Shown piece after piece: positions 3,819 to 60,498 of a DNA stretch of 64,000 nt; the stretch's first letter is position 1; every line of letters starts with the position of its first letter. The notes under the pieces are model-generated. The model was given only the letters and a program-made list of their open reading frames with translations, did not search any database and had not been told where the DNA came from. The translations under genes and the position numbers were made by a program. The DNA is from Macrostomum lignano (Eukaryota). The stretch lies in NCBI GenBank assembly GCA_002269645.1, contig NIVC01000819.1, positions 210,328 through 274,327 on the forward strand, written 5' to 3'.

Positions 3819-6807
3819 ATGGCCCGGTTATCTCTGCTCTCAGCGATTCTGCTGCACCTGGTTGTTGTCTCCATGCAGCAGGGTGACGATGAGGCTCTCG
3901 GTGAGTTGCCATTGTCCGGCCTTCGGTGCTACTTGTGATCTGGGCTATCGCCACCTTCACATTATTTTATGATTCGAAGGCCGATTTTGATAATTAGTGA
4001 GATAAGTTATTGCATGAAGCTAAAATGAAATCTCAATTTTAGCCTCTAGTAAAGTTTTTACTCAGATCGATTGACTCGTGAAAATCCCTTTTATAAAGCG
4101 CATAACTCTCAGATGAGTATTGAGAAGCCGAGCAGAGGCCATAGAGACACTGAGAAGCCAAGCAGTGGCCAGAGAGACAGTGAGAAGCCGAGCAGTGGCC
4201 AGAGAGACAGTGAGAAGCCAAGCATGTGGCCAGAGAGACAGTGAGAAGCCGAGCAGTGGCCAGAGAGACAGTGAGAAGCCAAGCATGTGGCCAGAGAGAC
4301 AGTGAGAAGCCGAGCAGTGGCCAGAGAGACAATGAGAAGCCGAGCAGTGGCCAGAGAGACAATGAGAAGCCGAGCAGTGGCCAGAGATACACTGAGAAGC
4401 CAAGCAGTGGCCAGAGAGACAATGAGAAGCCGAGCAGAGGCCAGATAGACACTGAGAAGCCAAGCAGTGGCCAGAGAGACACTGAGAAGCCGAGCAGTGG
4501 CCAGAGAGACAATGAGAAGCCGAGCAGAGGCCAGAGAGACACTGAGAAGCCGAGCAGTGGCCAGAGAGACAGTGAGAAGCCGAGCAGTGGCCAGAGAGAC
4601 AGTGAGAAGCCAAGCAGAGGCCATAGAGACAGTGAGAAGCCGAGCAGTGGCCAGAGAGACAGTGAGAAGCCGAGCAGTGGCCAGAGAGACAGTGAGAAGC
4701 CATATCTTCACCACTGGAGCAGAAACTTCTACACAAGATTTTAAGCTACTCAGCAAGTAGTATAAACCATGCATAGCCGTTGCTGAACCCCCGCAATCCG
4801 CAGAAATTCGACAGCGATTCAACAGCACCTCGGTGTCGATGATCAACGACCAGATCCAAAGAGAGTTCAACGCCATGTACCTCTACGAGACAATGGTAAG
4901 TCTTTCCTGATCCCACGCATTGCCAAGGTCGCCACCCAACCAACTTAATTATGTTAAACCCTACGGAGCGTCATACTCTGGGGGTACCTTGAGCTCACGC
5001 CCACTTCGCTCGTATTCAAAGTTCATGGTAATTTTTATATTGTTAATTTTATTAAAAACTCCACCACCGTGTGGATCTCGATCAGTTGAACCCCAGGGTT
5101 TTGACGCCGGTTTCTTTCGATCCAAATCCCTGGCTCAAATTCTAAAAACCGAGTTTGCCGACCGCCACGCCCGCAGGCCAGCTACTTCGGCAGGCCCAGC
5201 GTCGGTCTTCCCGGCTTCAAGAAATTCTTCAAGAAAGCCGCCGACGAGGAGCGCGAGCATGCACACAAACTGATCGACTACCTCAACATGCGGGGCGGCC
5301 ACGTCAGGCTGAAGCCAATTACCGTGAGTGCCTGGTCACCCGGTCACCTAACATCTGGTCAACTAACACCTGATCACCTAACATCTGATCACCAACACTT
5401 GGCCACCTAACACTTGGTCACCTGATCCCCTGGTCACCTGATCCCTGATCACCTGATCCCTAGTCACCTGATCCTTGGTCACCTGATCCCCTGGTCACCT
5501 GATCCCTGATCACCTGATCCCTAGTCACCTGATTCCCTGGTCACCTGATCCCTGGTCACCTGATCCCTAGTCACCTGATCCCTGGTCACCTGATCCCGGG
5601 TCACCTGATTCCCTGGTCACCTGATCCCTGGTCACCTGATCCCTAGTCACCTGATCCCTGGTCACCTGATCCCCGGGTCACCTGATTCCCTGGTCACCTG
5701 ATCCCTGGTCACCTGATCCCTGGTCACCTGATCCCTGGTCACCTGATCCCCTGGTCACCTGATTCATGGTCACCTGATCCCTGCTCACCTGATCCCTGTT
5801 CACCTGATCCCCGGGTCACCTGATTCACTGGTCACCTGATCCCTGGTCACCTGATCCCTGGTCACCTGATCCCTGGTCACCTGATCCCCTGGTCACCTGA
5901 TCCCTGGTCACCTGATCCTCTGATCCCAGTTCCCGGTCATTATAACAATTTTATATTTATTTTTCAGACTACAGATTAAGCTTCAATGTAGCCCCACAAA
6001 CTCATCTTTGTTGCAGCCTCCCAGCAAGTTCGAGTGGTTCTCCGCCCTTGACGCAGCCGAGACGGCTCTTGGCGCCGAGAAGAACATCACGCTGGAGTTG
6101 TACAGACTGCGAGATCGGGCTGACATGGAGAGCGACCCGCATGTGAGTCCTGCTGTAGATGGCTGCTCTGATTACTCTCTTAGTTGCTAAATTAGCTTAC
6201 GAAAATATGAGCGCCATTCCCTGAAAATACTGGCGCCATTCTTTGTGAAATATCAGGTGCAATTCACTGTCAAAGCAATTAATTCACTCTCGTATTTTGA
6301 GGGCCTTTTCGTCTTCACGCATTGTTCTAATGGCTCATCCATCGAACCCAAACGGTGTCGAAACGGTGACTGACTGACAGCAGGTCACCTGATCCCCTGG
6401 TCACCTGATCCGCCTACACTCTGACGCACGTCATTGATTGGCTGGTTGGGTCAGCTGTCAGTTGCCCCAGCTGACTCACCCTCAACCTCCGCCCCGACGT
6501 TCCAACCAAAAGCCAGCCAATCAGCAACTTGCAGAACTGTTTAGCAGACTATTATTCTATCATATTATTTTATTTTCTGCAAAAACTCACCTTTAGCTTA
6601 ATAGCAAATAACTGTGCGCGTGGTATTCCTCATGGTATTCCTCAAATTGCTACTCAATTCTTGAACTTTCAGCTGGTGGACTTCATCGAGTCCGAGTTCC
6701 TGACCGAGCAGGTGACGGGCATCCGGGATCTGCGGGAACTCATCGCCCGCCTCAACAAGGCTGGCAGCGGCCTTGGCGAGCTCATTTTGGACAAGGAGCT
6801 CAACTAG
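3819..6807 (+). CDS. Secreted ferritin copy 1, ferroxidase centre intact (193 aa)
   Basis: Exons 3819-3900, 4804-4895, 5177-5323, 6017-6142 and 6673-6807, all GT-AG and phase-compatible. Signal peptide MARLSLLSAILLHLVVVS. Ferritin motifs QIQREFNAMYLY, ADEEREHAHKL, ALGAEKNI, DPHLVDFIESEFLTEQV correspond to human-H E27, Y34, E61, E62, H65, E107 and Q141, all present. Confidence 0.96.
4119..4700. repeat. 30-bp minisatellite (AGCAGTGGCCAGAGAGACAGTGAGAAGCCG)n in ferritin 1 intron 1
   Basis: About 19 units; accounts for the repetitive ORFs at 4039-4876. Confidence 0.96.
5330..5930. repeat. 14-15-bp minisatellite (CCTGGTCACCTGATC)n in ferritin 1 intron 3
   Basis: Dozens of imperfect units; shorter homologues lie in the same intron of copies 2 and 3. 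Confidence 0.95.
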
Positions 6808-7145
6808 AGACTGTGGAGGAGAGGACTGACGCAAAGTCTCATAGGTGTAGCTGATTAGCCTGAATTCAGGACCAGCATAATGACGCTCAAGGTTTCAGAT
6901 TAAATATCGACGTGACTCCATTTTCTGATATCGGCGCTTTAACTACGAGCGCATTATCCGAATTCCTTTTAACTATCAATGATTTGAACAAAATAATCTG
7001 CGGTGAGTCACTCCAGCATAGTTGTATTAGAGGATCGACTTTACTACAATGGAGAAAGCATATTTTCATTTATTCACCAACTAGTAACGAATAAACATCT
7101 GATTTTACTTCGATGCATCGCTCGAACATTTTCCGGCTTTGAAAA

Positions 7146-7193
7146 AAAACTTGCATTCAAACTTGCATTCAAACTTGCATTCAAACTTGCATT
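7146..7193. repeat. 12-bp repeat (AAACTTGCATTC)x4
   Basis: Four exact units. Confidence 0.9.
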
Positions 7194-7394
7194 CAGTAGA
7201 AGTTGTGCTTTACCCTTAACTGGAAATTAAACTTCGATGAAAAAATTTGGGAGTTGAACTGACTAGATTTTAGAATCACGTGACTTTTTGCTTTAACAAC
7301 CTCAGATATAACAAAACGAGTAGTATACTATTAGAAACATATCACAGAAAACAGCAACGCAACCGTAGAAAAACAGCATCGTCACAAGTAGAGA

Positions 7395-7601
7395 CAAAAC
7401 AGCATGACAGCATAGAAAACAGCATGACAGCATAGAAAACAGCATGACAGCATAGAAAACAGCATGACAGCATAGAAAACAGCATGACAGTATAGAAAAC
7501 AGCATGACAGCATAGAAAACAGCATGACAGCATAGAAAACAGCATGACAGTATAGAAAACAGCATGACAGCATAGAAAACAGCATGACAGCATAGAAAAC
7601 A
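7395..7601. repeat. 20-bp minisatellite (CATAGAAAACAGCATGACAG)n
   Basis: About 10 units, directly abutting the C-terminal end of the piggyBac relic. Confidence 0.93.
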
Positions 7602-7602
7602 A

Positions 7603-9568
7603 GTTGCAGCAAGAGATAGGAGGCCAGCTTGAAAAACTACTTCTGCGTTCTTCTACTTGTCTTGTAGGGCTCACAACTCAATCCTGTCCACTCCTCCCAT
7701 GCTTTGGTTGTAGTCTAGAGCTGTTTGAGATTTCAGCAGGTGCTGCTCCTGACCGCCTGGCTGAACCCTTGTAACTTGCACACTGTGCCAGCACTGTCTA
7801 GCATGTACACGGTCTTTAACCCAGAGGCTCGCCGATTCACAATCTTCACAGCTAGCAGCTCCCCACGCCTAGAAAATGCGTTGGATGGTGGGTGCAACAC
7901 CTGCTGCTTCAGAGCCGCGTTGTGCTCGCACTGTGCCTGTCAACAGAGTGTCTCTCTGGAGCAACCAGTCAGTGAGCCGTGCCGAGCAAAACCAGCTGTC
8001 ACAAAAGATCCTGTATCTGAGGTTGAAGATATCCCGAGACAGTTCTACGATGATGCGTTCCGACAGCGACAGCTGCTGCGCATCCTGGTCCAACAGGTTG
8101 TTTTGGGCTACAGTGGAGTGGATCAGAAAGTTCCAACAGGTTGTTTTGGGCCGCAGTGGAGTGGATCAGAAAGTTCCAACAGGTTGTTTTGGGCTACAGT
8201 GGAGTGGATCAGAAAGTTCCAACAGGTTGTTTTGGGCTACAGTGGAGTGGATCAGAAAGTTCCAACAGGTTGTTTTGAGCCGCAGTGGAGTGGATCAGAA
8301 AGTTCCAACAGGTTGTTTTGGGCTAGAGTGGAGTAGATCAGAAAGTTCCAACAGGTTGTTTTGAGCCGCAGTGGAGTGGATCAGAAAGTTCCAACAGGTT
8401 GTTTTGGGCTACAGTGGAGTGGATCAGAAAGTTCCAACAGGTTGTTTTGGGCTACAGTGGAGTGGATCAGAAAGTTCCAACAGGTTGTTTTGGGCTACAG
8501 TCGAGTGGATCAGAAAGTTCTAACAGGTTGTTTTGGGCCGCAGTGGAGTGGATCAGAAAGTTCCAACAGGTTGTTTTGGGCTACAGTGGAGTGGATCAGA
8601 AAGTTCCAACAGGTTGTTTTGGGCTACAGTGGAGTGGATCAGAAAGTTCCAGCTGGTTGTTTTGGGCTACAGTGGAGTGGATCAGAAAGTTCCAACAGGT
8701 TGTTTTGGGCCGCAGTGGAGTGGATCAGAAAGTTCCAACAGGTTGTTTTGGGCTGCAGTGGAGTGGATCAGAAAGTTCCAACAGGTTGTTTTGGGCTGCA
8801 GTGGAGTGGATCAGAAAGTTCCAGCAGGTTGTTTTGGGCTGCAGTGGAGTGGATCAGAAAGTTCCAACCGGTTGTTTTGGGCCGCAGTGGAGTGGATCAG
8901 AAAGTTCCACAAATAGCCTCTGTTCAATTCGGCTGGACAGTACAGCTTGCCGAGCTTTGCCATTTTGTTGGGCATGTACTGAAGAAAGTGGAGCCTACCT
9001 TTGTAAAGTACCAATGACTTGTCAACAGTAATATTTTGAAGTGGCATGTACTTATTTTGACAGATGGACTGGACTTTGTTTAAAAAGGGTCGATCTTGCA
9101 CAGTGGACCAGCTTCTTTAACCTCCGTGCAATCGTAGCAGCGAAACCAGGTCATGGTGAGATGACTCATGGCGGAAGAAGTCCTGATGATGCATAAGATC
9201 GGTTGACCAATACATGCTAATATCTGGCTTCTGTACTACTCCCATGTGCAGCGGAATCCCGATAAACTGCATTTCATTCAAGCTGCATGCTGGCTTCCAA
9301 TTTAGGAGCTTCCATGGCAGCTCTCCGTTTTCTTGTTGACTTTGCGTAACAGCCCTGTCTGCTCTGGCGGTTGTCCAGGCGCACAAACTTTGCAGAAGAC
9401 TGTCGGGAAGAAACTGACCAAGGATGGCAGCCATGCAATTTTCAATGTTGTCCGGCACAAGAAAATCCGGATGCAGACCAGGCACAGACCAATAAGTATA
9501 ACTAGACTGCGCATGTGGGGCAAGAAATGTGTGCCTCTTTCCAAGTAGGATAAATGGGGTCGCCATCA
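7603..9568 (-). mobile_element. Degenerate piggyBac (PGBD4-like) transposase relic, interrupted by a minisatellite
   Basis: Minus-strand fragments EMQFIGIPLHMGVVQKPDISMYWST, ITVDKSLVLYKGRLHFLQYMP...GYLWNFLIHS, IFCDSWFCS...LLTGTVR and DYNQSMGGVDR match the three DDD-motif regions of piggyBac. It has stops and frameshifts; no TIR or TTAA was found. Confidence 0.88.
8090..8910. repeat. 43-bp minisatellite derived from piggyBac coding sequence
   Basis: About 19 units of CAACAGGTTGTTTTGGGCTACAGTGGAGTGGATCAGAAAGTTC; the reverse complement encodes the transposase segment (W)NFLIHSTVAQNN. Confidence 0.95.
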
Positions 9569-10342
9569 TAAACCCGAGATATCACAAACCCGAAATATCA
9601 CAAACCCGAAATATCATAAACCCGAAATATCATAAACCCGAAATATCATAAACCCGAAATATCATAAACTCGAAATATCACAAACCCGAAATATCACAAA
9701 CCCGAAATATCACAAACCCGAAATATCACAAACCCGAAATATCGCAAACCCGAAATATCACAAACCCGAAATATCACAAACCCGAAATATCACAAACCCG
9801 AAATATCACAAACCCGAAATATCACAAACCCGAAATATCACAAACCCGAAATATCACAAACCCGAAATATCACAAACCCGAAATATCACAAACCCGAAAT
9901 ATCACAAACCCGAAATATCACAAACCCGAAATATCACAAACCCGAAATATCACAAACCCGAAATATCACAAACCCGAAATATCACAAACCCGAAATATCA
10001 CAAACCCGAAATATCACAAACACGAAATATCACAAACCCGAAATATCACAAACCCGAAATATCACAAACCCGAAATATCACAAACCCGAAATATCAAAAA
10101 CCCGAAATATCACAAACCCGAAATATCACAAACCCGAAATATCACAAACCCGAAGTATCACAAACCCGAAATATCACAAACCCGAAATATCACAAACCCG
10201 AAATATCACAAACCCGAAATATCACAAACCCGAAATATCATAAACCCGAAATATCACAAACCCGAAATATCATAAACCCGAAATATCACAAACCTGAAAT
10301 ATCACAAACCCGAAATATCACAAACCCGAAATATCACAAACC
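9569..10342. repeat. 16-bp satellite (AAACCCGAAATATCAC)n, left half
   Basis: About 48 units; continues after the LTR element. Confidence 0.97.
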
Positions 10343-10645
10343 TGTGGCGGACAAGTGCAAGCACACCTGAAGACGGCCGTTTAGATGCCCTCGCGCTCCC
10401 TGCTCATCACGCCGCGTCTATGCGCCACCAACCCCGGAGATTAGGGGTGGGGGTTCGCCCACCCAGCCTGAGCTACGTGGGGGTTGGGGTTGACTGACTA
10501 ACTAGCGCGTTGGCCTATTTAACCTGATTGTGCGCAGACGCTTGTAAGAACCTTTTGCTCTCCGCAAATACAATTTCAAGTCTGCACGCAGTAGCTACTG
10601 CCCGCTTCATTGGTGAGCCCGACAACCCGCCATTTCGTCTAACAC

Positions 10646-11318
10646 ATGGCGCCACCCACTGAGTCAACTGTTGCACTCAAGCTGCCCACGTTTTGGGCCA
10701 TGCAGCCACGCGCGTGGTTCATCCAGGCAGAGGCCCAGTTCCAGCTGCGCGGCATCACCCAGGACGACACCAAGTATCACCACTTGGTCGCCTCGCTTGA
10801 TCAACAAACCGCCGAGCGCCTGCTGGACGTTCTGGAAAGCCCTCCGAGCGAGGACAAATACGGCAAACTGAAAGGGCGCCTGCTCGGCACTTTCAGTCTC
10901 ACCCGGCAGCAGCGAGCTAGCCGTTTGCTCAGCATGTCCGGCCTGGGAGATCGCCGGCCGTCCGAGATGATGGACGAGATGCTGGCCCTGCTTGGTGATC
11001 ATCGATCAGCTGCCCGTGGACATCCGGATGGTGCTCGCATCCGCCGACTTCGAAGACCCCCGGGCAGTCGCGCAGCTCGCCGACCAGCTCTGGGTCAGCC
11101 GGCCCCAGCCAGTGGCCGCTTCCGCCCAGTTGGCAGGTCCGCCGGAGGTTTGCGCTGCGCGTCAGGCTGCGCGTCTCCGCACCACGTCGCCCCGGCCTGG
11201 GCACCGCGGCACCCGCGCCCAGGAGCTGTGCTACTTCCACCGCAAGTTCGGCGCGAAGGCTAGGCAATGCGAGCAGCCCTGCAGCTTTCCGGGAAACGGG
11301 CCGGCCGGCCGCCAGTGA
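10646..11318 (+). pseudogene. gag of the CsRn1-like element, frameshifted near 10997
   Basis: LKLPTFW...PRAWFIQAEAQF...GDRRPSEMMDEMLALLGDH in one frame; DQLPVDIRMVL...CYFHRKFGAKARQCEQPC in another. Confidence 0.88.
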
Positions 11319-11366
11319 CCATCGCGGCGGCCGGCAACCTGCTGCTCATCCGGCCGGCGGTTCCTG

Positions 11367-14300
11367 GTGGACACAGGCGCCGAGGTAAGCATTTTCCCAG
11401 CCTCTGCAGATGATGCCCGCGCCCGTTCACCTGGCCCGCCGCTGTTCGCCGCGAACGGCACCCGCATCCGAACCTTCGGCGGCCGCAGCATCACACTGGA
11501 CGTCGGCCTGAAGACCTGCACCTGGCCATTCGTGTTGGCCGAGGTCTCCCGGCCGTTGATCGGCGCCGACTTCCTGCGCCACCACGGCCTGCTGGTGGAC
11601 CTGCCCAACCGCCGCCTTCTGGACGCCGCCTCCCTGGCCAGTGTGCAATTGCTGGCTGGCTCCGGTTCTGCGCCTCAGCTCGCCGCCGCGGTTGCCAGGG
11701 ACCCGTACAGCCGGCTGCTGGCGGAGTTCCCCAGCATCACGGAGCCCAGCTTCAGCAAAGCCACGCCGCGGCACGGCGTGGAGCACTACATACCGACGAC
11801 GGGCCCGCCGATGCATGCTAGAGCGCGCCGCCTGCCGCCCGACAAGCTGGCCGCGGCCAAGGAAGAGTTTCGCAACCTGGAGCAGCTCGGCATTGTGCGG
11901 CGGTCCAGCAGCCCCTGGTCCTCGCCGCTGCACATGGTGCCCAAGACTTCCGGCGGTTGGCGGCCCTGCGGCGATTTCCGGCGGCTCAATGACGCCACGG
12001 TGCCCGACCGCTACCCCGTGCCGCATATCCAGGATTGCTCAGCGCGCCTGAGCGGCTGCACAGTGTTCTCGAAGATCGACCTGGTGCGGGGCTACCACCA
12101 GATCCCGGTCGCGCAAACGGACATCCCGAAGACCGCCGTCATTACACCGTTTGGGTTGTTTGAGTTCCTCCGCATGCCGTTCGGGTTGAAAAATGCGGCA
12201 CAGGCCTTCCAGCGGTTAGTAGATTCGATATGCCAGGACCTGCCGGCCGTCTTCGCGTACATCGACGATTTCCTGGTCGCCAGCAGCAGCCCCGAGCAGC
12301 ACGAGGAGCACCTGCGGAAGCTGTTCCAGCGCCTCGCTGACAACGGCCTGTTGCTCAACCCAGCCAAGTGCCAGTTTGGCCGCAGCGAGATCGATTTCCT
12401 CGGCCACAGGATCAGCGCTGCGGGCGCCATGCCGCTGCCGGACAAGGTCGACGCAGTCGCCAGGTTCGCGCCGCCCACGACGGTGAAGGGTCTCCAGGAG
12501 TTTGCCGGGATGGTGAACTTCTATCACCGCTTCGTGCCCCGCGCAGCCCGTTTGCTGCGCCCGATCTACCAGGCCATGGCCGGCAAGGAGAAGCTGGTGC
12601 GGTGGACGCCGGAGCTGACCGAGGCCTTCGACAAGACCAAGCAGGCGCTGGCCGACGCGATCATGCTGGCGCACCCCAGGCCCGACGCGCCGCTGGCCCT
12701 CACCGTAGATGCTTCTGACACCGCCGTGGGCGCCGTCCTCGAGCAGCGTGTCGGCCCCGCCTGGCAGCCGCTCGCATTCTTCAGCCGGCAGTTGCGACCT
12801 GCGGAGGTAAAGTACAGTGCCTTCGACCGCGAGCTCCTGGCACTGTACCTAGCGGTCCGCCACTTCCGTTACCTCCTTCAGGGGCGCCACTTCACAGCCT
12901 ACACGGACCACAAGCCGTTGGCCGCCGCCATGGCCAAGCTGTCCGACCCGTGGTCCGCTCGGCGGCAGCGGCACCTGGCGTACGTGAGCGAATTCACCAC
13001 GGACGTCCAGCACATCGCCGGCAAAAACAATCCGGTGGCCGACGCGCTGTCCCGCTGCACCGTGGCCAGCGTGCTACCCGGCATCGATTTTGCCGCGATG
13101 TCGCAGGCCCAACATGCCCCGACCGAGTTGCCGCCGCCCGGCTCCGGCCTCCGACTAGAGCGCGTGACCCTCCGCCCAGGCCTGGAGCTGCTCTGCGACG
13201 TCTCCACCGGCCACCCCCGCCCGCTGGTGCCGCCCGAATTCCGACGGCCGGTGTTCGACGCCATCCACGGCCTCGCGCACCCATCAATCCGCAGCTCCCG
13301 CCGCCTCGTTGCAGACCGTTTCGTCTGGCCCGGCCTCAACCGCAACGTCGGCCGTTGGGCTCGCAGCTGCCTCGCCTGCCAGACGACTAAGGTCCAGCAG
13401 CATGTTGTCAGCCCGCCAGACAGCATCCCGGTGCCCCGCGACCGCTTCGCGCACGTGCACATCGACCTGGTGGGCCCGCTTCCGCACTCTCAAGGGTGCT
13501 CGCACCTGCTGACCGTTGTCGACCGGTTCACGTGTTGGCCGGAAGCAATTCCGCTGGCAGACACGTCCGCCGCTACCTGTGCGGCCGCATTCGCGCACTG
13601 GATTGCCCGTTTCGGTGTGCCAAGCGACCTCACGTCAGACCGCGGCCCGCAGTTCACCTCGGAGCTGTGGTCCAACGTGTCCCGCTTGCTTGGCACGCAG
13701 CTGCACCAGACGACGGCCTTCCACCCACAGGCCAACGGGCTTGTGGAGCGGTTCCACCGGCAGCTCAAGGCTTCCCTGATGGCGCGGCTGACGGGGCCGT
13801 CCTGGACTGCCGAGCTGCCCTGGGTGTTGCTCGGCATCCGCACCGCTCCCAAGGAGGATCTCGGCACGTCATCGGCGGAGTTGGTGTACGGAGTCCCACT
13901 GGCGGTGCCGGGCGAGTGTCTGCAGGCCAGCTCGCCTACGGGCCATGACGGGTTCCTCACGCGCCTGCGCCAGGCCGTGCAGGCTTTCCGCCCGCCACCG
14001 ACCTCCCAGCATGGCCGCCGCCCCACCGCCCTGCCTGCTGTCTTGGACACCTGCACGCACGTCTTCGTCCGCCGCGACGGGCACCGACCGGCGCTGCAAC
14101 CGCCTTATCTAGGTCCCTTCAAGGTGCTGGAGCGCGGCGCTAAGGCTTTCCTCCTCGACCTCGTCACTAGGCGGGACTTCGTGTCGGTGGACCGGCTCAA
14201 GCCAGCGGCGCTTGACCCTGCCAGCCCGGTTTCGACGCCTCAAATTCGGCCAAGGGGGCGGCCGCGCGAGCCCACCGTCCCGGGCGCCGCGACGGCCGAA

Positions 14301-14426
14301 CCGCTGCGCCGCCGCCCGCCGCGGCGCCGCCAGCCACACCGCCGTTGCCGTCGAGTACCGGAGGCCACCGCTGGGGGGGAGCCGTGTGGCGGACAAGTGC
14401 AAGCACACCTGAAGACGGCCGTTTAG
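11367..14426 (+). CDS. pol polyprotein (PR-RT-RNase H-integrase-GPY/F), open over 1019 codons
   Basis: DTGA protease; RT LRMPFGL and YIDD; RNase H DAS...[10 protein letters not shown]...TDH; integrase H...H...[25 protein letters not shown]; YLGPF. Confidence 0.96.
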
Positions 14427-14651
14427 ATGCCCTCGCGCTCCCTGCTCATCACGCCGCGTCTATGCGCCACCAACCCCCGAGATTAGGGGTGGTGGTTCGC
14501 CCACCCAGCCTGAACTACGTGGGGGTTGGGGTTGACTGACTAACTAGCGCGTTGGCCTATTTAACCTGATTGTGCGCAGACGCTTGTAAGAACCTTTTGC
14601 TCTCCGCAAATACAATTTCAAGTCTGCACGCAGTAGCTACTGCCCGCTTCA

Positions 14652-15480
14652 AACCCGAAATATCATAAACCCGAAATATCACAAACCCGAAATATCACAA
14701 ACCCGAAATATCACAAACCCGAAATATCGCAAACCCGAAATATCACAAACCCGAAATATCACAAACCCGAAATATCACAAACCCGAAATATCACAAACCC
14801 GAAATATCACAAACCCGAAATATCACAAACCCGAAATATCACAAACCCGAAATATCACAAACCCGAAATATCACAAACCCGAAATATCACAAACCCGAAA
14901 TATCACAAACACGAAATATCACAAACCCGAAATATCACAAACCCGAAATATCACAAACCCGAAATATCACAAACCCGAAATATCACAAACACGAAATATC
15001 ACAAACCCGAAATATCACAAACCCGAAATATCACAAACCCGAAATATCACAAACCCGAAATATCACAAACCCGAAGTATCACAAACCCGAAATATCACAA
15101 ACCCGAAATATCACAAACCCGAAATATCACAAACCCGAAATATCACAAACCCGAAATATCACAAACCCGAAGTATCACAAACCCGAAATATCACAAACCC
15201 GAAATATCACAAACCCGAAATATCACAAACCCGAAATATCACAAACCCGAAATATCACAAACCCGAAATATCACAAACCCGAAATATCACAAACCCGAAA
15301 TATCACAAACCCGAAATATCACAAACCCGAAATATCACAAACCCGAAATATCACAAACCCGAAATATCATAAACCCGAAATATCATAAACCCGAAATATC
15401 ACAAACCCGAAATATCACAAACCCGAAATATCACAAACCCGAAATATCACAAACCCGAAATATCATAAACCCGAAATATC
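14652..15480. repeat. 16-bp satellite (AAACCCGAAATATCAC)n, right half
   Basis: About 52 units, in register with the left half once the LTR element and one TSD are removed. Confidence 0.97.
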
Positions 15481-15494
15481 AGGTTGTTTTGGGC

Positions 15495-16560
15495 CGCCTC
15501 AGGTGGATTTACACTGCCATTGTTAGACCGGCCATCTCCTTTGCCGGCTACATTTGGAACAGTGCCCTAGAGGTGAAAGGGCTTCTTGAAGCTCCTAATA
15601 GGGTGCAAGGCCGCGCTTCTTGAGCTATCATGAGCGCGACTCCCTCTACGCCCTTTGCTGGCATGAACTCCTTTCTGGACCTTCCCGGTGACCTCTTTGT
15701 CAGAGGGGCGGCAGTAAAGACCACCCGCCGTCTGCTCGACGTGGGTGGCCCTCATCCAGAAGCAGTTCACCTTTAGAAAGCGGAACCTCCGGCTAAAGCT
15801 AGTCACAGAATAGCGTGAAGGCATAGAGGGGGCGTACACTACAGGGTCCCAAATCAACTCCGCCTCTGACTACGGCTACTGCATCGTATCTGGAGGGAGA
15901 ACTGCGGCGACCTTCTCCCAGCACACCGCGGCACCTGCTCCACCGTTTCTCAGAACGAAGTTCTCGCCATCAGCTCCTGCGCCATAGAGATGTACAATCA
16001 GTGTGTCTGAGGGAAGGAGATTACCCTCCACTCAAACATTCAGTGGCGATCAACGCGCTCGGATCAACCAGTGGGTGGCTTCAAAGCACAGGGAGATGTG
16101 GACGAATGCCCCCGACTGCCAGAAATCTCCCCTGTCCTTCCCCCGCCCTCCACAGCACCCTGCTTGGACTCAGCCGCAGGGACATCAGGGCGGTGCCCAT
16201 GGCTCTCTCGGTCATTGCTGTTTTGCCAGGCATCGCCACCTCCAGGAAAAAATCCGTAGCGAAGAATGCCCTTTCTGCGTCTCCGGTGTCGAGAATGCGG
16301 AGCACTTCATCTGTGAATGCCCCGCCTTTACTCAGGACAGGCTCGCCTACCTCGGCCCAAAACCGGACCTCTCCGAGGTTTTTAGGCCCGAGAATCTCCT
16401 CCGAGAATCGCGGAGGGGGACCGCGCTGCGGACACCGGCACCACCGGATCTCCCTGCGCGACACCGCAGCACCAGCTGCCCGTGGTCGCCAAGGGGTTAG
16501 GGGAATCGCCACCCCGCTGTGTCCGGATGCCCGGAGCGCCCTGCAGCTGAGTCAAGAAGT
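15495..16560 (+). mobile_element. 5'-truncated, degenerate non-LTR retrotransposon (R1/LOA/I-like 3' end)
   Basis: RWIYTAIVRPAISFAGYIW...MSATPSTPFAGMNSFLDLP (post-RT region), then GHCCFARH...CPFC...ENAEHFICECP (C-terminal CCHC knuckle); frameshifted. Confidence 0.8.
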
Positions 16561-16816
16561 GCTAGCTAAGGCCGGCAGGGTCAGAGAGAGCCGTGAGAAG
16601 TAAAAAAGTAATCAGCAAAATTCAGAATTCAACCGGAGGCCAAGTTGATACGAGTAACAAGTTTCCTGTGCTGGCCTGAAATTTCTTGCCCTACTGATAA
16701 GACGGCCGATATGAATAGGCTGTCAGTTCGGAAGTTGCTTTTCCTTCCTTTAAAAGACTCAACTTTTACCAAGCCAAATTGACTGATTCTTCGAAAGAAA
16801 ACCAACAGAAGCGACT

Positions 16817-18850
16817 ATGGCCCGGTTCTCTCTGCTTTCAGTGATTCTCCTGCACCTGGTGGTTGTCTCCATGCAGCAGGGCGACGATGAGACTCTCGGT
16901 GAGTTGCCGTTGTCCGGCCTTCGGTGCTACTTGTGATCTGGGCTATCGCCACCTTCACACGACCTGGCGTATTTTGATTTCATAAGTTCAAGAAGCTAAA
17001 ATTAAATCTAGTTTAAGCTTAATTTTGGCCTCTAGTAATGCTTTTAATCAGATCGACTAACTTGTAAAATACCTCTGTAAGGCTCATAACTAACTTATAA
17101 TGCTCAGGCATTGAGAAGTCAAGCAGTGGCTAATAGAGACAGTGAGAAGCCATATCTTAAACCACTGCAGCGCTGCAAAATCTTCAGACAACATTTTAAG
17201 CTACTAGCAGGTAATACGAGCGCATAAAACATGCACGTTGCTGAACCCCCCGCAATCCGCAGACATTCGACAGAGGCTCTGCAGCATCTCGGTGTCGATG
17301 ATCAACGACCAGATCGAAAGAGAGTTCAGCGCCATGTACCTCTACGAGACTGTGGTAAGTCTTTTTCCTGACCCCACGCATTGCCAAGGTCTCCACCCAA
17401 CGACCTTAATTCGTGCTAAACTCTGCACAGCGTCTTACTCAGGGAGTACGAGCGTACCTTGAGCTCACGCCCACCCTCTAACTTGCTCAGAGTTTATGGA
17501 AACTTTTCTATCAATAATTTTGTTAAAACAAACTCTTAGCCATCGTGTGAAACTCTATCCGTTGAACCCCCGCTTTTAACCTCAGTTTCATTCAATCCGA
17601 ATTCCTAGCTCAAATTAAAAACGCAAGTTCGCCGACCGCCACGCCCGCAGGCCAACTACTTCGGCGGGCCCAGCGTCGGTCTTCCCTGCATCAAGAATTT
17701 TTTCAAGAAGGCCGCCGACAAGCAGCGAGAGCGCGCGCACAAACTGATCGACTACCTCATCATGCGGGGCGGCCACGTCAGGCTGAAGCTGATTATTGTG
17801 AGTGCTTGTTCACCAAGCCACTTCACACCTGGTCACCTAACACCTGGTCACCTAACACCTGATCACCTAACACCTGGTAACCTAACACCTGGTAACCTAA
17901 CACCTGGTCACCTAACACCTGGTAACCTAACACCTGATCCCCTTGTCACCTGATCCCTGGTCACCTGATCCCCTGGTCACCTGATACCCTGGTCACCTGA
18001 TCCCCAGGGTTAACTGACCCCCTGGTCACCTGATCCACTGATCACTTGATCCTCTGATCCCAGTTCCCGGTTATTAGAACAGTTTTATATTTATTTTTCA
18101 AACTACAGCTTAAAGCTTCAATGTAGCCCCATAAACGTATCTTTGTGGCAGCCTCCTGGCAAGTTTGACTGGTCCTCCGCCCTTGCTGCAGCCAAGATGG
18201 CTCTTGACGTCGAGAGGAACATCACACAGGAGTTGTACAGACTGCGAGATCGGGCCGTCGACATGGGGAGCGACCCGCATGTAAGCCTTACTGTAGATGG
18301 CCGCTCTGATTGGGTACTGAACTAGTCTGTCAAATATTGAGTGCATTTCTGTCAAATCGATAAATTCATTCTCATGTATTTGGGGCTTTCTATGCTTCAC
18401 GCATAGTTCTAATGCCAACAAAACACCAGCCAAAATGCTACGCTGTGAGGCACCTCGCTGATTGGCTGGCTGGCTCAGCCCCAGCTGACTCACCCCCAAC
18501 CTCCGCCCCGAACTCCCTACCACCAGCCAGCCAATCATCAGCGTCAGTATTTTTTCAAGAGACTATTATCCATATACTAAAATATACTAAAAATTCTATC
18601 TAAGTCTTCCATTTGCTACAAAAATGCTCACCTTCAGCATAACAGAAAATAACTGTATATGTCTCTATGTCTACGTGCACTCTACAAAATTGATACTCGA
18701 GTCTTGAAATTTCAGCTGGTGGGCTTCATCGAGTCCGAGTTCCTGACCGAGCAGGTGACGGGCATCCGGGATCTGCGGAAACTCATTGCTCGCCTGTCTA
18801 GGGCTGGCAGCGGCCTTGGCGGGCTCATTGTGGATAAGGAGCTCAACTAG
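16817..18850 (+). CDS. Secreted ferritin copy 2, ferroxidase-degenerate (194 aa)
   Basis: Exons 16817-16898, 17263-17354, 17651-17797, 18152-18280 and 18716-18850; open frame and all GT-AG sites kept. Helix B reads ADKQRERAHKL; three-fold channel segment reads DPHLVGFIE. Confidence 0.93.
17820..18060. repeat. GGTCACCTAACACCT / CCTGGTCACCTGATC repeats in ferritin 2 intron 3
   Basis: Shorter homologue of the 5330-5930 array. Confidence 0.88.
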
Positions 18851-19084
18851 AGACTGCGGAGAGGTCGGAGAGGACCGACGCGATGTCATGCGTGTAGCTG
18901 ACTTGCCTGACTGCAGGACCAGCATTATGACGCTCAAGCTGGGTTTCAGATTATCGATGACTCCATTTTCTGATACCAGCGCTATAATTACGAATTATAG
19001 TATCGTATAGTATCGTTATCCGAATTCCCTGGTCACTTAACACCTGATCAATCTTGTCCAACGGCACCTATGGTCATCTTGTAC

Positions 19085-19250
19085 TACTGGCGCCACACGA
19101 AAGACCCACATGAGCAAGCGTGACAGCAACACGCCGAAGCGGAAATATTCATGTGTAGGATGCCAACCTCGCTTGGTTTCGGGCACGCCTGTCGTCAACA
19201 GGTCGGCGCTCGCTTGCCTGCCCGTGCTTGGTCCTGCAGCTGCATGGCCG
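19085..19250 (+). repeat. Dispersed repeat, second copy at about 26716-26895
   Basis: Both start TGGCGCCACACGAAAG and share CACGCCGA(A)GCGGAAATA...TAGGATGCCAA...TTGGTTTCG...GTCGGCGCTCGC. Confidence 0.75.
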
Positions 19251-19939
19251 CCGCTGCAGTAAAGTGCATGCGGTTTTTACTGTATTTTGTCTTGATCAAT
19301 TGATAAAGATAAATTTAAGTTTGCACCTGTTTGTAAATAATTTTTCAAATTGGTTCAGTTTTCTATTAGCAAAAACCATGAATGAAATAATCCAGGCAGC
19401 AACAGTCCAAACCGTCACTCTAGACCAAGATGTCAAGGGGGGAAATGGCTGAGATGTCGGTCAGAAGCTACATGTAGTTTATTGAATTTTCATATTCCAT
19501 TCTTCGTTGCCGAGTTTGAGGACGAAAGACGTCAGACTGTTGGGGCGGCGCTGATTGCTACATGTAGTTTTCATTCTGAAACGCAGGTATCCGGCTGAAG
19601 TGATACATTTTTGGCTCAACAAATTGATTGAAGGATAGCCGATCCCCTCCCTGCAACAGACTGAAGCTATCAGTTCGCCGGAACAAAAGAACCTTACAAC
19701 GAAATTGAGCTAATCGAGCTTCTTATTTAAACACCCCCTTCATATTATAGCTCATATTCTCTGTTAGCATAACCGAGATTGTTAACATCAAATACAGTGG
19801 CCTCTAAATTAACATTCCTTGTGATTGCATCGTCAGGAAAAGTTTGTAGAATCTGCCGCCTTAGTTATTTGTCCCTCTAACTGATAAAAGAAGCTATTCA
19901 TTCACAGAGCCGTAGTAGTGAGAGTCCAGAAGACGTAGG

Positions 19940-21100
19940 ACACCCCCATAATAAAATATTTCAGCTTCTTCACCAGCGGGGCTGAAACCGCTCCCTCTTC
20001 TTGACAAGCCGCCCCTGGTTGGTAGAGCTCTCAGTGTTGGCAGTAAGTGCCGGCTGCTCAGGCGCCGGCTGATTGCCGAGATGCAGTGCAGCCCCAATGT
20101 CGGAAATGCTCTCAGTGTCTCCCAGGTCACTTTCGAAGAAAGAAACGCCGAACTTGCGAAGCCAGATGAAGCGCCGAAAAGCCTTGCAGCTGTCCGGTTT
20201 CCGTGCGCACCCAGTACAAGCTCGGACAGTCGCCCACCCTAGCTTTCCATCTCAGCAGCCACAGAGTCCCAGCGACCACGCTGAAGCCAGACTGGCTGGC
20301 CCGCTGTCAGATGCTAAGCGGACGTGCACCGCAGTTGTACATTTGTACTGCTCGGATCCGCTCTTTCTAAAATGCTTCGATGCTGTCGTGGACGTCAGCC
20401 TCTCGAGGTCGCAGCAGGCCCTGCACAGTTGTGGGCAGGTCGCATCCAAGCTTTCGGCCGAAGGCCACCCCAGCCGGACTTGGGAAGCCGCTGCCCGACA
20501 GGAGTGTTCCGGTAGTGCAGGAGTGCCGTCTCCAGGCTTTGGCCAGTCTCCTTGCACTTCTTCATCCGATCCTTCGCTGTTTGCACTTACCGCTCTGCTC
20601 TGCCGTTCGACTACGGATACGGTGGGCTTGGTGTCCTGTGCTCGACTAAACCTCGTAATCAGTTGACGGAGCGCCAGGTCCGAGAAGCCGTCGCTGATAA
20701 GCTTCTCATGCACACCGAAGTTCTGCAAGTGGTCCTGCAGTACTTGCACTACAACCAGGCTGTACACCAGGTAGGAGGCGCCGCTGTACTCAAATAGATC
20801 AGACGAGTAGATTTAGAAGGGGAAGTCGGAATCTCCACGGACGTCAGAGCCTCTTTTGGCTGCGTCTTCATGTTCCGCTGGCAGACTTCGAACTGGCTGA
20901 CTGTGCGCTCGATGCAGTTGTGCATGCCAGGCCATGGTAGAAGTAATCCCTGGCATTCAGGCCCATCTTCACGATGCCAGGGTGCCCCGCGTGCAGGATG
21001 TTGAGGATGGAATTCCTGGTGCTGTCTTCGCGCACGTAGATGCTGTCTTTCAGACATAGAAGCCCTGAAACGAACGTCAGATCGCACCGGAGATCCTAGA
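19940..21100 (-). mobile_element. Degenerate Gypsy integrase relic
   Basis: Minus-strand fragments ILNILHAGHPGIVKM, WPGMHNCIERTVSQFEVCQ (zinc-finger region), FGVHEKLISDG, VVERQ and ALLHYRNTP; multiple frameshifts. Confidence 0.8.
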
Positions 21101-21114
21101 ACGAGACAGACAAC

Positions 21115-21305
21115 TAGACACGAGAATCAGTGTGAGCAGAGTTCATTAGACACGAGAATCAGTGTGAGCTGAGCTCATTAGACACGAGAATCAGTGTGAG
21201 CTGAGCTCATTAGACACGAGAATCAGTGTGAGCTGAGCTCATTAGACACGAGAATCAGTGTGAGCTGAGCTCAATAGACACGAGTATTAGTCTGAGCTGA
21301 GCTCA
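21115..21305. repeat. 32-bp minisatellite, short copy upstream of ferritin 3
   Basis: About 6 units of the 2525-3435 unit. Confidence 0.93.
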
Positions 21306-21585
21306 TCGCATGCAAAGGTGTAGCTAGGTGAGGCCGGCTGGGTCAGAGAGCCGTGAGAAGTAAAAAAGTTATCAGCAAAATGCAAGCAAGAATTCAACCA
21401 GACGCCAAGTTGATAACAGGTTCCTCTGCTGGCCTGGAATCTCTTGCCCTACTGATAAGACGGCCGATACGCTTGAATCTGAATGGGCTGTCACTTCAGA
21501 AGTTGTCAGCTTACTTCCTTAAAAAGGCTCAATTTTGGCCGTGCTAAGTTGACTGATTCTTTGACACAAACCAACAGAAGCGACA

Positions 21586-23433
21586 ATGGCCCGGTTCTCT
21601 CTGCTTTCAGCGATTCTCCTGCACCTTGTGGTTGTCTCCATGCAGCAGGGCGACGATGAGACTCTCGGTGAGATGTCATTGCTTGGCCTTAGGTGCTTCT
21701 TGTGATGTGGGCTATCACACATTTTTTATGGTTTGAAGACCGGTTTCATTTATTTGTGGGATGAGTTCTTGCATGAGGCTAAAATGAAATCTACGAGTAT
21801 TTTTTTATTTAAATCTGTAGTAATGATTTTAATCTGCTTTCTTGTAAAAAGTCTTAAAATCTGTTTACAAGGCGCAAAAATAAACTATAATAATGCTCAG
21901 GTGAGTATTGAGAAGCCAAGCAGTGACCATAGAGACAGTGAGAAGCCAAGCAGTGGTCATAGAGACAGTGAGAAGCCAAGCAGAGGCCAGAGAGACAGTG
22001 AGAACCCATATCTTCCACCACTGCAGCAAAAACTTCTTACACAAGATTTTAAGCTACTCAGCAAGTAGTATAAACCATGCATAGCCGTTGCTGAACCCGC
22101 GCAATCCGCAGACATTCGACAGCGATTCGGCAGCAGCTCGGTGTCGATGATCAACGACCAGATCCAAAGAGAGTTCAACGCCATGTACCTCTACGAGACA
22201 ATGGTAAGTCTTTCCTAATCCCACGCATTTTCAAAGTCGCCACCGACCCAACTTTTTAGTGCTATGTTTATGTTGAACCCTGCGGAGCGTCAGTGGATGC
22301 GAGCGTACCTTGAGCTCACGCTCACCCTCAAGCTTGTTCAAAGTTTGTGGTTGTTTTTTCTAAATACGAGCTAGTTTTGTGTGGGTGGACTCCAGATATT
22401 TTGACATCTGTTTCATTCGATTCAAATCCCTGGCTCAAATTCCAAAGGGCAACTTTGCCGACCGCCCGCCCGCAGGCCAGCTACTTCGGCAGGCCCAGCG
22501 TCGGTCTTCCCGGCTTTACGAAATTCTTGAAGAAAGCCGCCAACAAGGAGCGAGAGCGTGCGCACAAGCTGATCGACTACCTCAACATGCGGGGCGGCCA
22601 CGTCAGGCTGAAGCCAATTACCGTGAGTTCCTGGTCACCTGGTCACCTAACGGATAGCGATAACTTAACACATGATCAATCTAGTCACCTGCTCATGTGA
22701 TACCCTGGTCACTTGATCCTCTGATCTTAGTTCCTGGTGATTATAACAATTTTATATTTATTTTTCAAGTTACAGCTTAAAGCTTCAATGTAGCCCCATA
22801 AATTTATCTTTCTTGCAGCCTCGCAGCAAGTTCGAGTGGTTCTCTGCCTTTGACGCAGCCGAGACGGCTCTTGGCGCCCAGAAGAACATCACGCTGGAGT
22901 TGTACAGACTGCGAGATCGGGCTGACATGGAGAGCGACCCGCATGTGAGTCCTACTGTAGCTGGCTGCTCTGATTGGGTGCAGAATTACCATGTCAAATA
23001 TTGGGGGCATTCCCTGTCAACTTACTAAATTTGTTCTCATGTGTTCGGGGCCTTCTTGTCTTCACGTATTGTTCCAACGGAGCTCATTAGTAAAACCCAA
23101 ACGGTCAAAACGCTACGCTCTGAGGCACGTCGCTGATTGGCTGGGTGGGTCAGCCCTCAGCTGACTCACCCCCAACCTCCGTCCCGACGTGCAGCATGTC
23201 TTCCATTTGCTACAAAAATGCTCACTTCGACTTTACTGAAAATAACTGCATATGCACATATTTTATGCAAAATTGCTACTCAAGTCTTGAACTTTCAGCT
23301 GGTGGACTTCATCGAGTCCGAGTTCCTGACCGAGCAGGTGACGAGCATCCGGGATCTGCGGGAACTCATCGCCCGCCTCAACAAGGCTGGCAGCGGCCTT
23401 GGCGAGCTCATTGTGGACAAGGAGCTCAACTAG
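21586..23433 (+). CDS. Secreted ferritin copy 3, ferroxidase-degenerate (193 aa)
   Basis: Exons 21586-21667, 22112-22203, 22476-22622, 22819-22944 and 23299-23433; open frame. ANKERERAHKL (E61K, H65R) and ALGAQKNI (E107Q). Confidence 0.94.

Positions 23434-53423: not shown

Positions 53424-60498
<7,075 letters not shown>

Follow-up and report, generated by a model that had tools for sequence, protein, structure and literature searches.

What use could a flatworm make of a catalytic ferritin gene that stands in tandem with two close copies whose ferroxidase site has been lost? The question is raised by the 64-kb stretch of DNA analysed here (the window), the terminal stretch of Macrostomum lignano contig NIVC01000819.1, where three five-exon ferritin genes, c1, c2 and c3, follow one another on the + strand inside 20 kb. 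The original prediction had described them as one catalytic and two ferroxidase-degenerate copies with the same exon phases, open frames and intact splice sites, and had proposed for the latter two a recent, lineage-specific origin as L-like subunits. The features concerned are as follows.

3819..6807, + strand: c1 (BOX15_Mlig015913g2), 193 aa, predicted to be secreted, full ferroxidase set, GT-AG model
3819-3900, 4804-4895, 5177-5323, 6017-6142, 6673-6807, + strand: exons of c1
5246..5260, + strand: ferroxidase codons of c1 (E61 5246-5248, E62 5249-5251, H65 5258-5260), with E107 at 6077-6079
9565..15481, + strand: Ty3-like LTR retrotransposon between c1 and c2, outside the ferritin system
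16817..18850, + strand: c2 (BOX15_Mlig024579g1), 194 aa, dead-site, predicted to be secreted, GT-AG model
16817-16898, 17263-17354, 17651-17797, 18152-18280, 18716-18850, + strand: exons of c2
17720..17734, + strand: mutated site of c2 (K61 AAG 17720-17722, Q62 CAG 17723-17725, R65 CGC 17732-17734)
21586..23433, + strand: c3 (BOX15_Mlig009973g3), 193 aa, dead-site, predicted to be secreted, GT-AG model
21586-21667, 22112-22203, 22476-22622, 22819-22944, 23299-23433, + strand: exons of c3
22545..22559, + strand: mutated site of c3 (K61 AAG 22545-22547, R65 CGT 22557-22559), with Q107 CAG at 22879-22881
3819..3900 (c1), 16817-16898 (c2), 21586-21667 (c3), + strand: exon 1, the signal-peptide exon by sequence features, MARLSLLSAILLHLVVVSMQQGDDEAL plus one base, phase 1

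All three genes are already covered by the RNA-seq-based annotation (c1 as Mlig015913.g2, c2 as Mlig024579.g1, c3 as Mlig009973.g3), and gene annotation in M. lignano was derived solely from RNA-seq and transcript evidence (PMC5730564). Our models, which run from the c1 ATG at 3819 to the c3 stop at 23433, return the annotated proteins: that of c1 equals P0085 and also the core of P0088, that of c2 is exactly P0005, and that of c3 is P0084 / PAA76470.1. Every intron is bounded by GT-AG, and since the exon lengths are 82/92/147/126(129)/135 the intron phases are 1,0,0,0 in each gene, as had been predicted. The layout is an extra 5' exon for a hydrophobic signal peptide followed by three ancestral ferritin introns. 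The exon-2 acceptor used is the downstream one, TCCGCAG/AMATTCG, with which the annotated proteins are obtained exactly; an upstream in-frame AG occurs in c1 and c3 but is destroyed in c2, where an additional C shifts the frame by +1. Exon 4 begins CAG/CCTCC, and an upstream in-frame extension reading 'LQCSP...' was assigned to the intron, since the alignment of c1 with solved ferritins has no gaps. Matches to Pfam Ferritin (PF00210, cut-off 24.5 bits) cover profile positions 3-141 of 142 at 115 bits for c1 (E = 2.7e-33), 80 for c2 (2.6e-22) and 99 for c3 (3.9e-28), and when the window was searched by tblastn with human FTH1, the ferritin-like exon sets recovered were exactly these three. The 10 kb that separate c1 from c2 are due to insertion of the retrotransposon, whose pol ORF (11367-14426) encodes RVT_1, RNase H and integrase domains and lies between arrays of 16-bp repeats (9565-10342 and 14650-15481); about 6 kb are missing at the corresponding place in a collinear locus (L004).

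A residue map, drawn against human FTH1 and FTL sequences, bears out the division into one catalytic and two degenerate copies. The peptides that had been quoted are all present on the + strand (ADEEREHA 5240-5263, ALGAEKN 6065-6085, ADKQRERA 17714-17737, ANKERERA 22539-22562, ALGAQKN 22867-22887). c1 has all seven ferroxidase residues (E27, Y34, E61, E62, H65, E107, Q141), as do both of its homeologues, and matches the H-type ferritin 6lp5 without gaps (E = 1.8e-44); judged by these residues, its di-iron ferroxidase centre is complete and the subunit is of H type. E61K and H65R are common to c2 and c3. To these c2 adds E62Q and D131G, so that its site reads K61, Q62, R65, and c3 adds H60N and E107Q; neither has a complete ferroxidase set. 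ALGAQKN, quoted earlier for c3, is indeed there, but the E107Q that it contains is confined to the window's copy, in a clade whose constraint is borderline (p = 0.055). The site codons are GAG GAG CGC GAG CAT GCA in c1, AAG CAG CGA GAG CGC GCG in c2 and AAG GAG CGA GAG CGT GCG in c3.

The trio is not an isolated one, as might have been supposed from the window alone. The ferritin family of M. lignano comprises at least 11 genes: c1-c2-c3 recurs in the same order on two further collinear contigs, making three loci in all, and two dispersed paralogues, m592 and m176, bear the identical lesion. All 11 have open frames and GT-AG introns. The deposited annotation lacks the c2-like copies of the two other loci. 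The family also includes a truncated exon 1-2 fragment (L002 4077-5318) and a frameshifted member (P0008). The dead-site genes, eight in number and spread over five contigs, all combine E61K (AAG) and H65R with the same two flanking synonymous changes, and K61 and R65 are invariant, with no reversion or decay. On this codon evidence the lesion is identical by descent and precedes the split of c2 from c3, as had been proposed. It was inherited by all four dead-site types (c2, c3, m592 and m176), which have since lost further ligands type by type (E62Q/K, E27Q, E107Q, and Asp131 to G/N/K); Asp131 of the 3-fold, iron-entry channel is gone in three of the four. Conservation extends to E134, to the E helix and to an N-I-T sequon.

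How old is this division? An unrooted NJ tree has the form c1 | c3 | (m592,(m176,c2)), in which the dead-site genes are one clade when the root is placed on the c1 stem. Outside M. lignano, no protein among 1.84 billion cluster representatives exceeds 47% identity, the best flatworm relative being from the tapeworm Hymenolepis at 45%; the catalytic/dead-site split therefore arose within the Macrostomum lineage, and by sequence comparison, within the reach of the databases, its origin is lineage-specific. That it was also recent is true only in a relative sense, as introns diverge by ~0.3 between paralogue types versus ~0.03-0.06 between duplicated loci, which puts the split at about 5-10 times the age of the genome duplication. 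The term L-like is apt only in that the ferroxidase site has been lost. The Macrostomum ferritins are H-derived, at 38-41% identity to human H versus 29-34% to human L, and c2 and c3, which are 80-92% identical to c1 in protein, are ruled out as orthologues of vertebrate FTL. Nor was the acidic nucleation cluster of the L chain (E57, E60, E61, E64, E67 on the cavity face of helix B) gained, the Macrostomum residues being K/R57, D/N60, K61, E64 and H67.

The product of exon 1 has an n-region, M-A-R, followed by a 14-residue h-region of mean Kyte-Doolittle hydropathy 2.5-3.0 in all 11 family genes. This stretch is without counterpart in cytosolic ferritins and has low pLDDT in the AlphaFold2 model of c2; sequence features predict an N-terminal signal peptide on catalytic and dead-site subunits alike. 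The model of c2, the most divergent copy, has a pLDDT of 82.5, a canonical A-E layout (helices 35-63, 70-96, 117-144, 149-180 and 184-192) and a target-normalised TM-score of 0.93 (rmsd 1.4 Å) to shrimp and human H ferritins, so that c2 is predicted to retain the canonical fold. Cys34 and Cys71 are new in c2, c1 and c3 being cysteine-free, and the pI, which is 5.2 for c1, rises to 6.4-8.0 for c2. No Rfam family reached its gathering score anywhere in the 64-kb window, an iron-responsive element (IRE) included, and upstream CNNNNNCAGWGH motifs considered as IRE candidates form only 0-3 of 5 stem pairs.

The dead-site copies are real genes under purifying selection, with omega about 0.4. A codon-model fit gives 0.41 on the dead-site branches, with omega = 1 rejected (p = 2e-6), and 0.17 for the three c2 homeologues (omega = 1 rejected, p = 0.0013), among which direct counting finds 6 non-synonymous versus 8 synonymous changes (binomial p = 0.007). 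In the c3 clade the neutrality test is borderline, as noted, the direct count is 12 non-synonymous versus 6 synonymous (p = 0.2), and the window's c3 carries the private replacements K73T, P109R, L118F and E107Q. Homeologue exons are free of any indel, versus 6-26 gap events in their introns, and codon bias is kept, GC3 being 0.78-0.80 in every copy versus an intron GC of 0.43-0.50. The dead-site genes are transcribed according to the RNA-seq-derived annotation, reads being not assignable among near-identical homeologues. Neither want of transcription nor a dN/dS near 1, named with the original prediction as signs of young pseudogenes, was thus found, c3 alone being borderline in the latter. 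It seems to us quite unlikely that these are redundant duplicates under relaxed constraint, drifting to pseudogenes in a duplicate-rich neopolyploid genome with no two-subunit logic behind them. Such drift would fit the high omega, which does not distinguish c1 from the other branches (difference p = 0.51), the figures and private changes of c3, the c2-like copies missing from the annotation, and the truncated and frameshifted relatives; it is hard to square with neutrality being rejected both for the dead-site branches jointly and for the c2 triplet, with 8 of 8 open frames and GT-AG ends at 32 of 32 introns despite the intron divergence and frequent intron indels, with the retained codon bias and the constancy of K61/R65, or with a confident fold prediction for c2. 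Redundancy is a known feature of the Mlig_3_7 assembly (PMC5730564), and mis-assembled haplotypes, or collapsed or expanded repeats of a single gene, might be suspected, but this we regard as vanishingly improbable: differences between the copies amount to 8-20% in protein and to about 30% in introns of unlike length, and two other contigs carry near-identical counterparts of each type in unchanged order.

What, then, are the dead-site subunits for? We incline, by analogy with the insect HCH/LCH ferritin, to a secreted cage of catalytic and dead-site subunits, a reading that seems plausible while falling somewhat short of probable. Subunits of the c1, c2 and c3 types would all enter the secretory pathway and co-assemble as 24-mer shells in which c1-type subunits oxidise Fe(II) and dead-site subunits serve as non-catalytic structural partners, the new basic side chains of K61/R65 pairing with the remaining carboxylates (E27, E62/E107) and so filling the former metal site. 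In the vertebrate L chain Lys62 pairs with Glu107, a parallel to the plug proposed here. In favour of a two-subunit cage, the trio is kept at three collinear loci with 11 of 11 genes intact; purifying selection, indel-free exons, codon bias and the predicted fold are all retained; and insects offer a precedent in neighbouring, co-regulated HCH and LCH genes (PMC4783870). Against it, 0.4 is a high omega for a ferritin and is no different on c1; neutrality of c3 is not formally rejected, and c3 has several private replacements, E107Q among them; the L-type acidic nucleation residues were not gained; an insect-style H-L disulfide is impossible because c1 is cysteine-free; and no promoter region in the set diverges more than that of c1 (74-78% identity), so that co-regulation is not assured. 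The loss of Asp131 would be explained equally well by a shift to a function without iron and by a passive structural role.

It is possible, if less likely, that the dead-site ferritins took on a non-iron role as abundant secreted or storage cages of their own (yolk, egg or another metal) rather than as partners of c1. Four types persist, diverge and shed further iron ligands along with the channel Asp131; the pI shift of c2, the missing IRE and a strong codon bias, which suggests high expression, would all agree, as would an omega in the range usual for reproductive or secreted proteins that evolve fast. Ferritins are major yolk proteins in planarians (PMC10697840), where aluminium, not iron, occurs in the vitellaria according to a study cited there as reference 68, and many invertebrates possess atypical ferritins that, by prediction, do not bind iron (PMC8395497). 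On the other side, the supplements of published M. lignano studies yielded no expression or localisation pattern for these genes, function cannot be transferred from a sampled ferritin since none is close to the Macrostomum family, and tight linkage and co-duplication with the catalytic copy are equally expected of partners. The two ideas might be joined: returning to the two-subunit cage, it is conceivable, although we would not count on it, that the lineage independently evolved a two-subunit secreted ferritin by way of the Lys61/Arg65 plug and then four dead-site isoforms that progressively lost the iron-entry channel. If so, plug and channel loss would point to a cage for non-iron use, for instance as a protein of eggs or yolk or to carry some other metal.

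Dead-site ferritin subunits as such are already known from vertebrates, insects and other invertebrates. Planarians have several ferritin paralogues (PMC10697840). Their yolk ferritins, like that of schistosomes, show flatworm ferritins in bulk use beyond ordinary cytosolic iron storage, but the Macrostomum proteins reach at most 47% identity to any flatworm ferritin. To our knowledge, Macrostomum is without vitellaria. The vertebrate L chain is likewise a non-catalytic subunit from an H-like ancestor in which a ferroxidase carboxylate has given way to a basic residue (E62K in L, E61K with H65R in Macrostomum) and E107 is usually kept; it differs in being cytosolic, in the positions changed (E27Y, E62K, H65G, Q141E) and in its acidic nucleation residues. 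Atypical ferritins, as a rule IRE-less and altered at several residues of the ferroxidase centre and channel, are reported to be widespread in invertebrates (Adameyko et al. 2021, PMC8395497), the sponge HdF2 having E27Q, E61S, E62K, H65S and E134A. The Macrostomum dead-site genes share these traits but are set apart by a signal peptide, by their tandem arrangement with a catalytic sister, and by a single K61/R65 lesion that can be traced through later duplications. A further resemblance is to Fer1HCH and Fer2LCH of Drosophila, mosquitoes and Trichoplusia, where signal peptides are borne by both subunit types (as predicted here), a catalytic subunit is paired with one devoid of the ferroxidase site, and the genes are chromosomal neighbours (PMC4783870), much as c1, c2 and c3 form a neighbouring, co-duplicated, signal-peptide-bearing array within 20 kb at three loci. 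However, the Macrostomum dead-site genes are nested in a Macrostomum-specific H-like clade, so the origin is independent, and they differ further in having no IRE, in a c1 that bars the H-L disulfide, and in four dead-site types where insects have one.

Exactly three ferritin-like exon sets are present in the 64 kb window when it is searched by tblastn with human FTH1, and we built their exon models by hand from splice signals and reading frames.

Ferritin genes of the window
c1, + strand, exons 3819-3900, 4804-4895, 5177-5323, 6017-6142, 6673-6807: catalytic ferritin, 193 aa
c2, + strand, exons 16817-16898, 17263-17354, 17651-17797, 18152-18280, 18716-18850: ferritin that has lost the ferroxidase centre (dead-site), 194 aa
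c3, + strand, exons 21586-21667, 22112-22203, 22476-22622, 22819-22944, 23299-23433: dead-site ferritin, 193 aa

The five peptide strings quoted in the original prediction are found on the + strand where expected, and its picture of three genes with common exon phases and intact splice sites holds: all introns are GT-AG, the phases are 1,0,0,0, and Pfam Ferritin matches all three proteins (E = 1e-22 to 1e-33). In c1 and c3 there are two in-frame exon-2 acceptors, spaced by 27 nt. The upstream one (CATAG/CC) was rejected, as c2 has lost its AG (CATAG to CAC) and has an additional C that shifts the frame, and the downstream site yields all annotated proteins. The latter (TCCGCAG/AMATTCG) is the only one intact in all copies, and the segment between the two reads as intron-like because its length is 27 or 28 nt among paralogues on other contigs. 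Reading exon 4 further upstream in frame ('LQCSPTNSSLLQ') was also rejected, since only the acceptor CAG/CCTCC gives a c1 protein whose alignment to solved ferritins is gapless.

The window corresponds to the final 64 kb of contig NIVC01000819.1, with 100% identity across 22 kb, and the nearest database proteins to c1, c2 and c3 are all from Macrostomum lignano. The c2 and c3 models are identical to BOX15_Mlig024579g1 (P0005) and BOX15_Mlig009973g3 (PAA76470.1), respectively, and for c1 identity is with UniProt A0A1I8HI12 and with the BOX15_Mlig015913g2 core; the trio is already in the databases, auto-named 'Ferritin'. The deposited annotation of Mlig_3_7 (GCA_002269645.1) has RNA-seq as its only source (PMC5730564): transcripts assembled along the genome with StringTie/TACO were combined with de novo transcripts mapped to it and with data on trans-splicing and poly(A), so that an annotated gene matching an exon model exactly is evidence of transcription and correct splicing. 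The concern that c2 and c3 might be untranscribed is thereby answered, with the caveat that reads from near-identical homeologues (the counterparts of the trio at duplicated loci) cannot be told apart in assignment. Full-text searches by gene identifier and by genus plus protein name turned up no publication that discusses these genes, and as regards expression pattern a generic FTH1 GO entry is the sole hit in the supplements of PMC5816591, PMC5946080, PMC7336406, PMC12896417 and PMC12732829.

The product of exon 1 begins M-A-R followed by a 14-residue hydrophobic core and is predicted, from its sequence, to be a typical signal peptide; this stretch has no counterpart in cytosolic ferritins and is of low confidence in the predicted c2 structure. 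If the 147-nt and 126-nt exons correspond to vertebrate FTH1 exons 2 and 3, as we take them to, then introns 2-4 are ancestral ferritin introns and exon 1 was added. The c2 model otherwise has the canonical ferritin fold (pLDDT 82.5), with a target-normalised TM-score of 0.93 against shrimp and human H ferritins, and the pI is higher in c2 (6.4-8.0) than in c1 (5.2). Two cysteines were gained in c2, N34C and G71C (codons 34 and 71; exons 2 and 3), and are kept by each of the three c2 homeologues; c1 and c3 lack cysteine altogether. In human numbering the two c2 cysteines are residues 13 and 50, which lie at opposite ends of the bundle of helices, and an inter-subunit bond therefore seems likelier than an intra-subunit one. 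An N-I-T sequon beside residue 107 is retained in 10 of the 11 family genes. All family members end in ...DKELN (c1 6793-6807 and equivalents), which resembles the ER-retrieval signal KDEL/DKEL plus one residue and probably goes back to the 'FDK' motif conserved at ferritin C-termini.

The trio belongs to a larger family. Two contigs, NIVC01001813.1 and NIVC01000816.1, align collinearly with the window (93-97.6% identity) and carry c1, c2 and c3 in the same order, in agreement with the documented redundancy of the neopolyploid M. lignano genome (PMC5730564). Two further dead-site paralogues are dispersed: m592 (P0003), on contig 592, and m176 (P0004), on contig 176, where it adjoins a Dicer gene. 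Each of the 11 genes has an open frame and canonical splice sites, and this, with the trio order repeated on two contigs, rules out misassembled haplotypes. At the two collinear loci, L004 (4669-7309) and L005 (595-2865), the c2-type genes are intact (194 aa, GT-AG introns) and missing from the deposited gene calls, so that c2 is annotated only in the window among the three loci.

Active-site residues by gene type, in human H numbering
c1, all three copies: E27, Y34, E61, E62, H65, E107 and Q141 all retained
Dead-site genes, 8 of 8: K61 and R65
c2: K61/R65 plus Q62 and G131
m592: K61/R65 plus K62 and N131
m176: K61/R65 plus Q27, Q107 and K131
c3: K61/R65 plus N60; Q107 in the window's copy only

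From the paralogue sequences a putative order of loss can be read, with K61/R65 first, followed by E62, E27, E107 and D131. That the first lesion predates the split of c2 and c3, as proposed in the original prediction, extends to every dead-site gene: K61 is AAG and R65 is CGY in all of them, and all have the neighbouring synonymous changes CGC>CGA and GCA>GCG, so the lesion is identical by descent. In an unrooted NJ tree of the 11 coding sequences, bootstrap values are 100% for c1, 82% for c3 and 98% for (m592,(m176,c2)). The dead-site genes form one clade when the root is placed on the c1 stem; support for a 'single origin' therefore comes from the common lesion, with which the NJ tree is compatible, rather than from a rooted phylogeny. 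Non-coding site patterns among the copies conflict strongly, and m592 resembles c3 in its upstream part but c1 from intron 3 on; the copies have therefore probably undergone some recombination or gene conversion with one another. Exons 4-5 of c1 and c3 are nearly identical and their flanking introns more than 20% different, a pattern that either gene conversion or strong exon constraint may have produced. The lesion, too, could have spread by conversion instead of by strict vertical descent.

Within M. lignano the ferritins of this family are at least 77% identical, and a HMMER search of 1.84 billion cluster representatives found no close relative elsewhere, with identities of at most 47%; the matches that follow come from a brachiopod, tapeworms, insects and crustaceans and are H-type ferritins of the ordinary kind. 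At current sampling, the lineage-specific origin first proposed for the catalytic/dead-site split is therefore upheld. Measured by neutral divergence, the split is nevertheless roughly 5-10 times as old as the genome duplication.

Pairwise Nei-Gojobori dN/dS values are noisy (0.46-0.72), and more is to be learned from the homeologue triplets, which record only changes after site loss. The c2 triplet has 6 non-synonymous and 8 synonymous changes (omega about 0.23, binomial p = 0.007), that of c3 has 12 and 6 (omega about 0.58, p = 0.2), and that of c1 has 5 and 1, which are very small counts. We also applied a self-written codon-model likelihood test (not codeml; GY94, F3x4 frequencies, NJ topology fixed).

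Codon-model omega and test against omega = 1
All branches: omega 0.41, p = 6e-7
Dead-site branches: omega 0.41, p = 2e-6
c2/m592/m176 clade: omega 0.41, p = 1.6e-5
Within the c2 triplet: omega 0.17, p = 0.0013
c3 clade: omega 0.41, p = 0.055

The ratio near 1 that would mark young pseudogenes is thus rejected for the dead-site branches, with the c3 clade at the margin, and the codon model detected no difference in omega between c1 and dead-site branches (p = 0.51). Between paralogue types, introns diverge by about 0.29-0.35 as against dS of 0.08-0.20 and dN of 0.03-0.13; GC3 is 0.78-0.80 in all copies versus 0.43-0.50 in introns, and homeologues differ by 6-26 gap events in introns and 0 in exons. 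Together, the triplet counts, the codon model and the exon/intron contrast show that selection maintains the dead-site genes, c2 most clearly. The constraint is loose by ferritin standards, and the case is weakest for the c3 copy of the window, to which simple decay may apply; for c2 such decay is unlikely. Dead family copies do exist, as a truncated fragment (L002 4077-5318, exon 1 with an additional Val codon and exon 2 only, 5 kb upstream of m592) and a frameshifted member (UniProt A0A1I8F5K3, P0008), and c2 and c3 are unlike them in appearance.

The surroundings of the trio contain several other features, among them exons of other genes.

Other features of the window
498-1001: CUB-domain ORF
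2525-3435 and 21115-21306: 32-bp minisatellite upstream of genes
4121-4701 and 21909-22008: 30-bp minisatellite in intron 1
5337-5918 and 17825-18056: 15-bp minisatellite in intron 3
9565-15481: Ty3-like LTR retrotransposon between c1 and c2 (pol ORF 11367-14426, DUF7041 ORF 10646-11263), bordered by 16-bp tandem arrays (9565-10342 and 14650-15481)
24530-25417, - strand: separate reverse-transcriptase fragment
29615-32180, + strand: DyP-type peroxidase gene (ORFs 29615-30172 and 30435-31190)
33772-37771, + strand: second Ty3-like retrotransposon, with gag-like ORFs and a 958-aa pol (RT, RNase H, integrase)
51009-51650: V-ATPase accessory subunit Ac45/VOA1 transmembrane domain
51.6-52.2 kb and 60.7-61.2 kb: long CTGT-type microsatellites
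55600-59430: RTF1-like Plus-3 domain, divided between two exons

The ferritin minisatellites occupy matching positions across paralogues, on other contigs too, with differing copy numbers (e.g. 28 vs 6, 19 vs 3), and explain most of the intron length difference. The insertion between c1 and c2 postdates the duplication of the loci, because L004 lacks about 6 kb there. The peroxidase gene (Pfam Dyp_perox_C, E = 5e-16), about 6 kb downstream of c3, keeps its position at both collinear loci, where it is annotated as 376-384 aa; its best solved relatives are bacterial YfeX/EfeB-like 'deferrochelatase/peroxidases', and its Ala/Arg-rich N-terminus resembles a mitochondrial presequence. To our knowledge, DyP peroxidases are uncommon in animals.

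The best-supported reading of the array, we infer, is a secreted shell in which catalytic c1-type and dead-site subunits would mix, with Lys61 and Arg65 perhaps pairing with the carboxylates left in the former di-iron site. Real room is left for a non-iron role: none of the dead-site types has gained L-type nucleation residues, three of the four have lost Asp131, a c1-c2 disulfide is impossible, neither Rfam at gathering threshold nor a motif scan detected an IRE, and omega is about 0.4. There is also precedent in planarian yolk ferritins (PMC10697840) and in the 'atypical' ferritins of invertebrates, for which iron binding is predicted to be absent (PMC8395497).

The result is at present an annotation-level refinement of deposited genes, and non-catalytic ferritin subunits and signal-peptide ferritins are already well known; the new element is an unusually legible, stepwise record of the dismantling of a ferroxidase site, the lesion being young enough for each step still to be read in the paralogues. 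M. lignano is amenable to transgenesis and RNAi and would thus be suited to studying the recurrent evolution of non-catalytic subunits in ferritin cages and the roles of secreted ferritins in flatworms. If dead-site subunits do co-assemble with c1, the mixed shell would be functionally convergent with those containing the vertebrate L chain and insect LCH, and would represent a third independent origin of the ferritin H/L division of labour after vertebrates and insects. In insects, the HCH and LCH genes are also neighbours, and they also encode signal peptides (PMC4783870).
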